Below, one piece after another: positions 35,664 to 41,600 of a DNA stretch of 64,000 bases. Position 1 is the first letter of the stretch, and the number at the start of each line of letters is the position of its first letter. This DNA is from Anaeramoeba ignava BMAN. Its lineage: Eukaryota; Protista; Anaeramoebae. The DNA is taken from positions 248,001-312,000 of the forward strand of contig JAPDFW010000136.1 of assembly GCA_028826165.1 (NCBI GenBank), in the 5' to 3' direction. Position numbers and translations under genes: made by a program. Below the pieces are notes generated by a model, which worked only from the letters and a program-made list of their open reading frames with translations, searched no databases and was not told the DNA's origin.

Positions 35664-38600
35664 TCATTTCTTTTTTTCAATTTCTTCTTCCAATTTAGAT
35701 TTTTCATTTAATTGATAATAATCAATAGCATCAAAAAGTTCTTTTTTAATTTTTCTAGAAACTCCTTTATCCAAAAAATCAAAATACAAAAATTTAATCA
35801 AAGATTGAATTGCTTTAAAAGATTTTCCCGAATAATCATTAACCATATTAGAATTATCATTAACATTTAAAAACATTCCTCTATATAAATCACTTCTAGC
35901 CATTAAAACGATTTTATGAACCATAATAAATTTCTTTTTAATTATAATTTTAAAATCTTTTGTATTTTCTTCAAAAAATAATTCACTAAAAACTCTTTTG
36001 ATTGTTTTTAATTTTGTTGGATCAAGCATAAGATCTGTTAACATTAATTCTACATTTTCTGTTTCTGGAGATCCTGTATAAATCCATTCAAAAAACTCAA
36101 GACTTTCTTCTTTTTTTTTGTTTTGAAATAAATTTTGAATTTCCGAAATGTTTTTGTTAAATATTTTTTCAACTAAAATTGAATGAACTCCAAATTCTCC
36201 ATTTTGTGTAATTATTTTAGAATCACATAATTCTTGTCTTTTGAATAATTGCTTTAAATCTTCTTGAAATGAGTTATTGATAAAAATGTTCTATTTTTAA
36301 AGAAGAAAATTATAATTAAAATTAAAATTAAAATTTTAAAAATATTTCTGTTTTTTTTTTGAGTTTGAACTTTAATATTATAAACACGAATTTTATTATC
36401 TCTACATCCAAGAAATAATTTTTTTTCATTAGAAGCAACAGACCAAATACAAGAACCTGTTTCAATTGATTGAAGAAATTTATTTGCCTTTTTTAATTTT
36501 TAAATTGTAAAATAATTTCTTTTTAAATTAAAAATCGGAAAAAAATTTTTTAAATTAAAAATCGGAAAAAAATTTTTTTTACTTCCAAATCCCAAATATT
36601 TGCAAATCCACTTTCATCACCTGAAACCATAATTCCTTGAACAACTGAAATTGAAATGATTGCATTTTCATGTTTATTCCAAACTCCAATTTGTTTTCCT
36701 GTCTAAATTATCAGTTAAAATGATTAAAATTAAAATGTGGAAAAAAAAATTTTTTTTTGTTGAATTTTTTGGATTAAATTTTCTGATTTTTTTTTTTACT
36801 TCCAAATTCCAAAATTTAATAAGATGATCACTAGCTCCAGTATAAAGAATATTATTATAAAAAGCCAAACCCCAAGTATCTTGTTCATGTTGAGAAAAAG
36901 TTCTTAATACTTTATAATTCTAAATTTAAATATTTAATTCAATTTAATAAATTTAATAAATTTAAAAAATTTAAAAAATTGTTTTTTTTTTTACATCTTC
37001 AAGAGCTCTTTCTTGAATTAATCCATTAGAAAGTCCACAATATAATTTTTTATTATAAATAATAAGAGATAGAACCTCAGCATCAAAATTTATTTCTGAT
37101 AATAAAATTAATTCTTTTTTATCAGCCTAAATTTAATTATAAATTTTGTTACAAATTTAATTATAAATTTAATTATAAATTTAATTATAAATTTTGTTAT
37201 AAATATAATTATAAATATAATTATAAATATAATTATAAATTTAATTATAAATTTAATTATAAATATGATTATAAATATAATTATAAATTTAATTACAAAT
37301 ATAATTATAAATATAATTATAAATTTAATTATAAATATAATTATAAATTTAATTACAAATATAATTATAAATATAATGGGCCTGTCCCAGGCCCATTTGC
37401 CAGAAAAAAAAAATAAAAAAAAATAATTAAACAATTTTTTAATTAATTTTTTTTTAATTAATTTTTTTTTAATTAATTTTTAATTAATTTTTCTTTCTTT
37501 CTTTCTTTCTTTCTTTCTTTCTTTCTTTCTTTCTTTCTTTCTTTCTTTCTTTCTTTCTTTCTTTCTTTCTTTCTTTCTTTCTTTCTTTCTTTCTTTCTTT
37601 CTTTCTTTCTTTCTTTCTTTCTTTCTTTCTTTCTTTCTTTCTTTCTTTCTTTCTTTCTTTCTTTCTTCTCATTTCCAAAAAGTGGAATTTCTCTTTATTC
37701 CTTTTTTCAACAAATTTTCAAGTTGTCGAATTGAGATAAAATCTCTTTTTTTTTGACTCAAAGAAAATAATTTGAGAATTAAATATCTGAAACGATAAAC
37801 AATATTCATTTCCAAGCAATTAGCCAGAAGATAAGGATTTAATCTCAGTTGAGAACAACCCCAACACATTAAAAGAACAAAAATCCCACAAGAATTTCCA
37901 TCTCTCTGATTCCAATGATGCCAAATTTGTTTAATCACAAAATCCATATTTAAGTAATTTTTGATGAACTTTTGGAGATTTTTTACAATTTGATAGGGAA
38001 TTCGTGAAAAAAGCGTTGATTTACTGTTGAATATTAACAATTCTCTTTGATTAAAATGTAGAAAAATCACCACATAATGCATATCATAATAGAAAATAAG
38101 AGGAATATATTGTTGTTCACTCACAGAGCATTTCAAGAAGAAATCTATCATCTTTTGGAATTCTCTATGACATTTCATCATATGATATGGAAACATGCTT
38201 TGATTTATCATAGCTTGTGCATATTGTTTCAAAATTGTCTTCTCTCTCGTGTGAAAATTTATCAAGAAATTTATCCAACATTCTTCAATAGGAATTTGTG
38301 GGATTTGCTTAAAATAGTCCAGAAACTTCCATAAAATGACAGAAGAAAATAGATTTTGAGACCAAATCACAAAAACAAAACCATAGTTGCGATCCCATGG
38401 TGAATTTATTATCAATTTCTTCTAAATTTGGAGGCATACCTTCTAAACATTCTATTAAGGGATTAAATTGAAGTTCAAAAAATTCAGGACCTTGATATAA
38501 TTTTTCAGACAGAAAGAATTCCAGAGAATTCATTATATCTGAAAAATCTAATAAGCCATGAAGGTCTATTCTGTACTCCCAATCTTCATTAATCCCAAGT

Positions 38601-41600
38601 TTTTCAAAATTTACAACTGGTGTTACTAAAGTCAACCCTCTGATCTCATTGAGCAAATTAGCTTTAGTAGGATCCTCTCGAGCTGAACCTTTACCGAAAT
38701 TTCTCAATTCTCGAAAACCAAATTTGGGATAAGTTTTTTCAATTCTTTTGGATTCACTTACATTAGTGACTTCCCATTTTTGAGAGTAATCAAAGTTCGA
38801 TTCTTTCTTCTCAATACTTGAAACCTCTTCTATTTCCATAAATTTTCCTACAAAATCTTTTTTGGCAATCTCTGTGTTCTTTTCTTCCTCATTGATTCGA
38901 TCATCCATCTCAAAAATGATTTTCTTTTCAATTTTCTCTTTTCTTTTCCCCACTTTTCTCCTCTTTAAACAGGAAATAAATCCATTATCAATTTTTATCA
39001 TTGTTGTATTCTCATTATTTTGGTTTCTCTTTTGATTTCTCTTTTGATTTCTCTTTTGATTTCTCTTTTGATTTCTATTTTGATTTCTCTTTTTATTTTC
39101 ATTTTCATTTTCACTTTCACTTTCATTTTGATTTTGATTTTGAATTTGAATTTGATTTTTATTTTGATTTTGATTTTGATTTTCATTTTGATTTTCATTT
39201 TGATTTTCATTTTGATTTTGATTTTGATTTTGATTTTGATTTTCATTTTGATTTTCATTTTGATATTCACTTTGATATTCATTTTGATATTCATTTTCAG
39301 TTTCATATTCACTTTGATATTCATTTTCATTTTCATTTTCATTTTCATATTCACTTTGATATTCATTTTCATTTTCATTTTCAGTTTCATTTTCACTTTG
39401 ATATTCATTTTCATTTTCATTTTCAGTTTCATATTCACTTTGATATTCATTTTCATTTTCATTTTCACTTTGATTTTCACTTTGATATTCATTTTCACTT
39501 TGATATTCATTTTCACTTTGATATTCATTTTCACTTTGATATTCATTTTCATTTTCACTTTGATATTCACTTTGATATTCATTTTGATATTCATATTCAT
39601 TTTCATATTCACTTTGATATTCATTTTCATTTTCATTTTCATTTTCATTTTCACTTTGATTTTCATTTTGATTTTCATTTTCATTTTCATTTTCATTTTC
39701 ATTTTGATTTTCATTTTGATTTTCATTTTCATTTTCATTTTGATTTTCATTTTGATTTTCATTTTGATTTTCATTTTGATTTTCACTTTGATATTCATTT
39801 TCATTTTCATTTTGATTTTCACTTTGATTTCTCTTTTTATTTCTCTTTTGATTTCTATTTTGATTTCTATTTTGATTTCTCTTTTTATTTTCATTTTCAT
39901 TTTCACTTTCACTTTCATTTTCATTTTGATTTTGATTTCTCTTTTGGTTTCTCCTTTGGTTTCTCCTTTGATTTCTCTTTTGATTTCTCTTTTGATTTCT
40001 ATTTTTCTCTTTTTCTTCTTTTTCCTTCTGTTTTCTGATTCTTTCCTCTTTTTTCCGCTTGTTAATTATTCTTCTCTTCTCTTGCTTAATTTCCACATTT
40101 TTCCATTCTTTTTCATCTCTAAATGTTTTTCGTAAAGATCCATTTCCTAATTTAAAATTATATAAAAGTGCACACACTTCGATTACTTGAATATGAAATT
40201 GTTTCTTGAGTTGAACCTTTTCCTTCAAAATTTTCCATTTTTTCAAGATCGAGAAAACATTTTCGATAATACATCGATAGCGGTTTATATGAAAATTATA
40301 TTTTTTATGGTTATTCTTTTTGTTTCTATACTCTCTTTTGGGTGTAATACAATATATAGCTGGAAATGCTTTATCTCCAAGAATTTTATGGGATTTCAAT
40401 AGTTCAAGAAGTCCAGATTTTGTTGTTGCCTTGGAATCATGCATGCTCCCTTGGAATCCAGTTTTGAAAAATATGATTTTCCCCTTACTATTGCACACAA
40501 CAATAGATTTGAGAGAAGAATGTCCTCTTTTGACAGAATGATATTTTTTTTCTTTCAAAAGATTCCGAAATCTGGGATGATCTGTCCCATCGATTACCCC
40601 AACACAGTTGGGGATTTTTCTTGATTGCCATTTTCGAATTTCTCTTATCCTCTCTTCTCTTGTTAACCAGTGAATTTGGTTGTTGAGAATTTCTCTTAAT
40701 AAAGGAACAATTTTTTTTAAATATCTTTCGACTGTACTCTTTCCAATTTTCCACATGGCTCCTAAGATGCGATAAGTGAGAGAATGCCTTAACCATGTTA
40801 ATGTGAGTAATAATTTATTTGGAAGATCAAGGGAAGGAATTTGAGATGGAGAAGAAAGAAGATTTTGGGAAGAAGTAGGATGCTCTTGTTGATAAATTTC
40901 AATTTTGGAAAGAATTTCTTCAAATTGTGAAAAAGACAATCCAGTCATATCGGGAGATAAGATATGAGAATTTCTTATTTCTGAATATAGATCCCTTTTC
41001 TCTGAAGAACGAAAATCCAAATTTGGTATAACATTCTGAGAGAATTTATCATTTTGATTCAATTCTTGTAAAAGAGTTGCGTTTTTTGTTTTAGAAAGAA
41101 AGAAGAAGAGCAAAGATTTAATAAATTTTGGATAACCTATATTTGGTGCCCCAAGTTTATCAAGAATTTCTTTCGTTTGTCGATAAATTCTTATTTGAGG
41201 ATGTTTTTCATTCGTTTTTTTTTGATTTCGTGTTGATTTCATATGAAAAAAGCAAAAAAAAAATTTGTTGTTTGTAAAAGAAGAAAAATGAAAGAAAAAT
41301 AAAAGAAAAATAAAAGAAAAATTAAAATAGAATAAATAAAGACAATTCTTTTTAGTTGGAAGATTTCAAGAAAAATTCTAAAAAACAAAAATAAAGTGAA
41401 GTTATGAGATCCTTTTGAATAGAAATGTTTTATAAAATTTAAAAAAGATTTTTTATTTATTTTTTTTTCTTGATTTTTTTCGAAATTTCTTTTTCGTTTC
41501 CTTCTCAAGACAATAATGTTAATTTTTGAATTTCATGTTGGATTGAAAGTTTATTTGATGATTAAATTTTTTTGTCGACACCGGGACGAGCCCAATTATA

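Follow-up and report, generated by a model that had tools for sequence, protein, structure and literature searches.

We analysed a 64,000-nucleotide stretch of the genome of Anaeramoeba ignava BMAN (assembly GCA_028826165.1, contig JAPDFW010000136.1, positions 248,001 to 312,000; hereafter "the window"), in which a transposon of the PHIS group occupies positions 37378-41593. Its only gene, on the minus strand, is predicted to encode a transposase with a Ulp1-like cysteine protease at its C-terminus. A first-pass annotation, made from the sequence letters alone, had proposed a bounded element of 4.2 kb at this place. Both boundaries can be set exactly from the element's terminal inverted repeats (TIRs) plus a flanking target-site duplication (TSD), giving a length of 4216 bp. 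The features of the region are as follows (window coordinates):

37130-37377, no strand: host 12-bp AT minisatellite outside the element, resuming at 41594 and running to about 42820
37375-37377, no strand: left TSD, AAT
37378-37388, minus strand: TIR at the 3' end of the element, 11 bp, imperfect, starting with GG
37495-37668, no strand: (TTTC)n microsatellite following the stop codon, differing in length among copies
37669-38600, minus strand: predicted clan-CE (C48/Ulp1-like) cysteine protease of a long-insertion subtype, with a constant-region motif at 38534-38554, His at 38077-38079, Asn at 38026-38028, Gln at 37906-37908 and Cys at 37888-37890
38376-38382, minus strand: site of a 2-nt deletion private to the window copy, the source of an apparent +1 overlapping reading frame
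39000-40040, minus strand: low-complexity NE/NQ/RNQK linker composed of repeats of 6 and 12 bp; the other copies have 30, 78 and 126 nt less, in frame
40157-40600, minus strand: DDE catalytic domain (PF13359), with D218 at 40589-40591, D290 at 40373-40375 and E327 at 40262-40264
40685-40834, minus strand: helix-turn-helix domain HTH_Tnp_4 (PF13613), from Pfam
41093-41242, minus strand: start codon (41242) and an N-terminal segment of about 45 amino acids, without a THAP motif
41583-41593, minus strand: TIR at the 5' end of the element
41594-41596, no strand: right TSD, AAT

A mobile element with one fused gene

The two TIRs match at nine of 11 positions, and the host site of insertion is the 12-bp AT minisatellite. 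The assembly searched for copies and relatives comprises 42.8 Mb in 147 contigs. It contains four full-length copies (the window copy, two on contig C134 and one on contig C137) that are bounded by the same ends, and a genome search with the end pattern returned exactly four. The protease is present in the three additional copies as well. Over the 2356 bases compared, the copies are 1 to 18 substitutions apart, and the movement of the family is therefore recent. The TSD is AAT in three copies and ACT in the fourth, L001, which allowed an empty-site check: after removal of the element and one 3-bp duplication, the host shows an open reading frame (ORF) of 596 codons, whereas removing 1, 2 or 4 bp leaves a stop at 501-503 codons; removing 0 bp also restores the frame. 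An ANT duplication was found in all eight PHIS elements with located ends (the four copies of the window family and four others), while the ends of the families L005/L004, L006 and L009 were not located with confidence. Judged by its sequence, the element is an autonomous, single-gene PHIS cut-and-paste transposon that was recently mobile.

Copy L001 interrupts a host gene in its 3' part (L001:148-1649 and 5629 onward; C134 near 56150 and 60128), and the product of this gene shows a weak N-terminal match to NYN ribonucleases (E 0.005). NYN proteins such as MARF1 are transposon repressors in mammals.

In the window copy, the transposase domains lie in an ORF of 977 amino acids (41242-38309) and the catalytic residues of the protease in a downstream frame (38415-37669) without an early ATG, in the order typical of clan CE (His 38077, Asn 38026, Gln 37906, Cys 37888). 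The first-pass annotation had described this motif order and an overlapping ORF in the +1 frame. The residues could be mapped, and the frame and its missing early ATG are real; the offset, however, is a private 2-nt deletion and no property of the element, as the two nucleotides are present in all three other copies, which read through at this site. All four copies carry private indels of their own, which mostly lie in or beside homopolymer runs. Nanopore assemblies are expected to show such a pattern, and this one was produced from nanopore data using Racon, Nanopolish and Pilon (PMC11550330; host transposons are not discussed in its main text). The deletion in the window copy may be an assembly error or a real mutation. 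In copy L001, a single frame of 810 codons leads from the end of the transposase through the linker into the protease, and linker lengths vary among copies in multiples of 6 nt, so that the frame is kept. Three related families (L005, L006 and L007), whose transposases are 38-42% identical to that of the window, have intact single ORFs of 817, 826 and 913 amino acids.

Since three of four copies read through and the three related families consist of intact single ORFs, we regard the locus as one gene, predicted to encode a transposase-linker-protease fusion protein of about 1190 amino acids. Counted across the break of the window copy, the fusion comprises 1191 amino acids; this length is a joined count, and the database searches were run on the transposase and protease pieces. 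Both the NE/NQ linker and the fusion suspected at first pass were thereby borne out. The overlapping frames of the window copy could also be read as two genes, or as a programmed ribosomal frameshift yielding transposase with and without protease. We rejected this reading by copy comparison and give it a negligible chance: the break is missing in the three other copies, each of which is broken elsewhere, and L005, L006, L007 and a metagenomic element described below are all single ORFs.

Placement of the transposase among PHIS elements

A Pfam search with the 977-amino-acid ORF matched HTH_Tnp_4 (E 1.9e-12) and DDE_Tnp_4 (E 2.4e-30), and the catalytic residues D218, D290 and E327 are invariant in an alignment of seven families, in agreement with the intact PHIS transposase initially proposed. 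The features of PHIS elements are all present, namely a transposase of the DDE_Tnp_4 type with an intact D-D-E, short TIRs and a 0-3 bp AT-rich target. The narrower label "Harbinger/ISL2EU-type", however, is contradicted by the ANT duplication and by absent partner genes. Strict PIF/Harbinger elements would require TWA, and we found no Myb/SANT second ORF, nor any other coding ORF, inside the element. For ISL2EU, the 2-bp AT duplication does not fit, as a 2-bp removal fails to restore the L001 host ORF; no family has a THAP (PF05485) match and there is no YqaJ exonuclease ORF. NCBI labels proteins of related elements "thap domain protein" despite zero PF05485 matches; the NCBI entries for related elements of A. 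ignava are KAJ5073650.1, KAJ5068379.1, KAJ5067144.1 and KAJ5071180.1.

ANT duplications are described for Pangu and bacterial IS5, TWA for Harbinger and AT for ISL2EU (Han et al. 2015, PMC4482050); Pangu corresponds to Harbinger2 in Repbase (PMC12730594). Like our element, Pangu has a 3-bp ANT duplication, TIRs (11-40 bp) starting with AG or GG, a size of 3-4 kb and a PHIS-type DDE domain, but its description (PMC4482050) gives two ORFs and a transposase that has no further domains, in contrast to the single ORF, HTH_Tnp_4 domain and fused protease found here. The element therefore has Pangu-like ends without Pangu's described gene layout; Pangu was compared by description, and our transposase tree was built without Pangu or ISL2EU sequences. 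Homolog searches by word index returned almost nothing, and no Pangu or ISL2EU reference proteins were among the results. With ISL2EU and the bacterial ISL2-type members of the IS5 family, the element shares the combination of HTH_Tnp_4 and DDE_Tnp_4 and the GG start of the TIRs. The nearest language-model cluster of the transposase is an "IS4EU" protein and its nearest plasmid matches are IS5-family transposases with 25-29% identity. Scans of viral contigs and bacterial genomes found no transposase relatives, and a metagenome scan gave 15 short prokaryote-type IS5/ISL2-like loci, none of which (0/15) carries a protease. Two decayed PHIS copies in A. ignava (L013:2377-2865 and L014:1650-3430, contig C35) also have no detectable protease.

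The N-terminal 45 amino acids of the L005, L007 and L006 transposases show weak matches to DUF7557 and VapB antitoxins (best E 2.5e-5, below cut-off). As a lead only, this segment could possibly be a ribbon-helix-helix DNA-binding unit at the place where ISL2EU has THAP; the structure model of the transposase, N-terminal segment included, is too poor for use (predicted local distance difference test score, pLDDT, 53).

One member was found outside Anaeramoeba. Among the 150 best matches of a full-library search, a protein of 831 amino acids (P0082) combines DDE_Tnp_4 with a C48-like domain that has the canonical His-Asp-Gln-Cys. It is encoded on a single GC-rich, eukaryote-like contig of JGI sample 3300048851, by an element of 2875 bp with 17-bp TIRs starting with AG, an AAT duplication and a single ORF. 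In the protease tree, its protease groups apart from the A. ignava proteases and may therefore represent a separate capture. A gene encoding an F-box and ankyrin repeats (L033:816-2042) adjoins this element. Such genes are common in amoebae and their giant viruses and give a clue to its host. A further metagenomic protein of 1090 amino acids (P0145, L069; JGI 3300082333) joins a PF20700 (Mutator-like) transposase to a C-terminal C48 domain.

The protease and its distribution among transposons

A C48 assignment of the downstream frame 37669-38415 had been put forward as a test of the Ulp1-like reading. No match to PF02902 over the gathering cut-off was obtained for the window piece, L005, L006 or L007, while pogo-borne relatives do reach this cut-off. 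A profile of the four families matches SENP2 (E 2e-8), ChlaDUB1, SENP1 and Ulp1, and these alignments keep His, Asn, Gln and Cys in register; the language-model neighbours of the protease are C48 clusters. The UniRef label of the piece is ubiquitin-like protease profile domain. In an AlphaFold model made from copy L001, the core reaches a pLDDT of 78-95 and the N-terminal half stays below 60. This model aligns with Ulp1 at Z 12.9 and a root-mean-square deviation of 4.2 over 196 aligned residues; SENP5, NEDP1 and one bacterial CE enzyme score equally well. The top 25 Foldseek matches all belong to clan CE. The Pfam part of the assignment thus failed, but profile, language-model neighbours and predicted fold place the protease in clan CE as a Ulp1-like enzyme.

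The catalytic residues are well conserved. All 11 aligned A. ignava transposon proteases have the His, Gln and Cys, and 10 of the 11 have the Asn. Asn also occurs in nine of 61 homologs outside this species. Although the four PHIS protease families show 21-23% identity to the window family, the four positions do not vary among them. The Asn, which the first-pass annotation had placed at the Asp position, indeed aligns with the catalytic Asp of SENP2 and is an accepted third triad residue in clan CE (PMC1847702). The spacing between the constant-region motif and the His is 157-159 amino acids in the window subtype versus 58 in the pogo subtype; the difference corresponds to an insertion of about 90-100 amino acids before the His strand, which is predicted to be helical and to lie on the substrate-binding side. 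Variable regions set ubiquitin or ubiquitin-like (Ub/Ubl) specificity in bacterial CE enzymes, and RickCE has a VR-2 insertion of about 75 residues (PMC4961225). The fold and the His-Asx-Gln-Cys order are thus shared with SENP, Ulp1, NEDP1 and the bacterial CE deubiquitinases ChlaDUB1, RickCE and ElaD (PMC4961225, PMC1847702), from which the transposon protease differs by its Asn triad, its long helical insertion and the Tyr that follows the catalytic His in the window family in place of Trp (Trp is kept in L005 and the pogo types). A search of 1.84 billion representatives found no close homolog of the long-insertion protease outside A. ignava (four matches below 1e-10, all from A. ignava). 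A host-like gene (L029:516-2907, contig C64 near 987000) has a degenerate C48 domain, seemingly without the catalytic His and Cys.

A profile search of the genome revealed about a dozen additional loci with related proteases. The carriers include pogo-type elements (DDE_1 and HTH_Tnp_Tc5, a C-terminal C48 domain over cut-off, TA duplication) and large elements with a C-terminal protease, a TTAA duplication and AG..CT ends (intact 1520-amino-acid ORF in L016), which we take to be Kolobok from their ends, with no Pfam match over cut-off. In a distant sister PHIS lineage (L008, L009 and L012), a USP domain (PF00443) stands in the protease's place, and the occurrence of this unrelated fold at the same position points to selection on a class of activity, not on one fold. 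L008:2398-6084 is an intact ORF of 1014 amino acids with an ATT duplication, identical to KAJ5071180.1 and annotated as a host ubiquitin hydrolase, and the same lineage is also found at contig C21:72337-74085.

The protease tree, based on the core only (132 columns, insertion left out), joins the window family, L006 and L007 with two Kolobok proteases (support 100/98) and leaves L005 outside, whose protease has its best BLAST scores with pogo. An approximately unbiased (AU) test rejected a single clade for the four PHIS proteases (p-AU 0.038). In the transposase tree, the four PHIS families, the JGI element and a fragment form one group (81/92, moderate support); L013 groups with the JGI element. 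As the two trees disagree, these results modestly suggest at least one exchange of the protease module between transposon superfamilies.

Elsewhere in the genome, we observed multicopy USP frames of 302-306 codons (C128:88078, C105:158640, C1:1084687, C80:249344, C24:736899, C59:7413, C48:41695 and C96:45721). In the window itself, pure AT satellites of kilobase scale with hardly any G/C occupy 32001-35000 and 42001-43000, and three ORFs of 1267, 1268 and 530 amino acids (18995-22798, plus strand; 22864-26670, minus strand; 27728-29320, minus strand) have no Pfam match.

A proposed counter-defence role and its precedents

By established knowledge, a transposase of this kind binds to the TIRs, cuts the element out and integrates it at ANT, with a stagger of 3 nt. 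Our proposal is that the protease acts as an isopeptidase on a modifier of the ubiquitin family and that the long, presumably disordered linker would tether it in cis at the element ends, near the transpososome. It could then free the transposase of Ub/Ubl marks set by the host, protecting it from degradation or inactivation, or remove such marks from nearby chromatin and repair proteins. As a swappable counter-defence module, it would have been acquired and exchanged among the transposon superfamilies of this genome. We consider this the best explanation, with a probability of roughly 55%.

Several observations count against this explanation. Two tryptophans line the Gly-Gly tunnel in SENPs, and both are replaced in the window family (by Leu and Tyr). 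By fold search, proteases for SUMO, NEDD8 and ubiquitin come out equal. A 1.47-kb sister (L010/L011) of the USP-bearing PHIS lineage has intact ends and no protease, and many pogo transposases of A. ignava gave no CE match; the module is therefore dispensable. For the proposed exchange, the AU p value lies just under 0.05, the alignment has 132 columns, the L005 branch is long, and the subtypes were visible before the test. The changed tunnel residues, together with the score below the Pfam C48 cut-off and the Asn in place of Asp, would also suit an inactive or neutral passenger or a mere Ubl-binding module. We hold such a passenger to be very improbable, as the four catalytic positions are kept across about 20% identity and three superfamilies, and the Asn is a known variant (PMC1847702).

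Self-processing, put forward at first pass, would have the protease free the transposase from a polyprotein, as viral clan-CE proteases do. The processing proteases I7L and pS273R are indeed among the fold matches and a long linker separates the domains, but the 977-amino-acid window ORF contains no Gly-Gly motif, the linkers are not conserved between families, and a USP at the same place is not expected to self-process. The proposal found no support and appears highly unlikely to us.

As for the substrate, we put ubiquitin/NEDD8 at about 50%, SUMO at about 30% and another or none at about 20%. The weak leaning towards ubiquitin over SUMO has three grounds: USP substitutes in the sister lineage, the insertion resembles those of bacterial deubiquitinases, and neither a host SUMO gene nor a SENP1/Ulp1-type gene was recovered. 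The host genome encodes Piwi/Argonaute proteins and many ubiquitin-like genes (127 matches genome-wide, many in tandem arrays and multi-domain ORFs). No SUMO-like gene was among the 20 ubiquitin-like loci read and the Uba2 UbL-domain had no match, although intron-split genes can be missed in both cases. The only clear host C48 gene is SENP8/NEDP1-like, with no SENP1/Ulp1-type gene found in a search that introns limit, and a single gene encodes a MIZ finger. A reduced host SUMO system is possible from these gene searches.

A specific deSUMOylase, protecting the element from SUMO-dependent transcriptional silencing, would agree with SENP2 as best sequence match, Ulp1 as best fold match, and the Piwi domains and MIZ-finger gene of the host. 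In Drosophila and C. elegans, SUMO ties small-RNA targeting to heterochromatin, as outlined in 10.1101/533091 and PMC8131101. However, the blanks for SUMO, Uba2 and SENP1/Ulp1-type genes, weakened as they are by introns, speak against it, and interchange with USP fits ubiquitin better; we regard such a deSUMOylase as unlikely. A further alternative is an effect on DNA repair: by taking Ub/SUMO off repair factors, the protease would modulate how the site of excision or insertion is mended, as proposed for Ginger1 elements of the same architecture (Bao et al. 2010, PMC2836005). The tether would place the enzyme at the break, but no data here separate this idea from the tag-removal model favoured above, and taken as a distinct explanation it seems quite unlikely.

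Transposon-borne deconjugases as such are already known. Ginger1 transposases carry a C-terminal Ulp1 or OTU domain, Mutator elements Ulp1 and Helitrons OTU (PMC2836005); C48 is found in oomycete Cryptons, for which an exchange of domains among groups of elements had been suggested before (PMC3212892). Ginger1 resembles our families in joining a DDE transposase to a C-terminal deconjugase of one of two unrelated folds per family, but its transposase is Gypsy-integrase-like, whereas here PHIS transposases are combined with CE or USP. By the description in PMC2836005, which cites a paper on an IS5-like element, XP_001314237.1 of Trichomonas vaginalis, another metamonad, joins a PF01609 transposase to a peptidase C19. 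This probably IS5-like protein with a fused deubiquitinase mirrors L008, L009 and L012 and differs from the window family by its USP fold in place of clan CE. Mutator/Kaonashi elements with ULP and the Cryptons with C48 likewise have an Ulp1-family protease as cargo, but on other transposase or recombinase types, and in CryptonS as a separate protein (PMC2836005, PMC3212892). In the papers searched, with Repbase and Dfam not covered, we found no published report of a PHIS element with a C48 protease. Of the undescribed PHIS lineage proposed initially, it is the pairing with PHIS that appears new.

More tentatively, and rather doubtful at present, these elements may form a distinct PHIS lineage (ANT, single ORF) in at least two unrelated microbial eukaryotes, with a true counter-defence deconjugase. 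A Ub/Ubl-based defence of Anaeramoeba against transposases would then have driven at least three superfamilies (PHIS, Kolobok and pogo) to capture and swap CE and USP domains. Among these is an Asn-type CE subfamily with a new substrate-binding insertion, which may have ubiquitin or a lineage-specific Ubl as its substrate.

The findings extend Ulp1 cargo to PHIS elements and draw attention to a subfamily of CE proteases overlooked by Pfam and given the wrong label at NCBI. Why transposons carry Ulp1, OTU or USP cargo has been a standing question since at least 2006-2010 (PMC2836005). The elements of A. ignava are small (3-4 kb), recently active and single-gene, and come with natural controls, as the same transposase lineage occurs with a long CE, a short CE, a USP or no protease. 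PHIS and Kolobok elements share one protease lineage as a further matched control, and the cargo question becomes testable.

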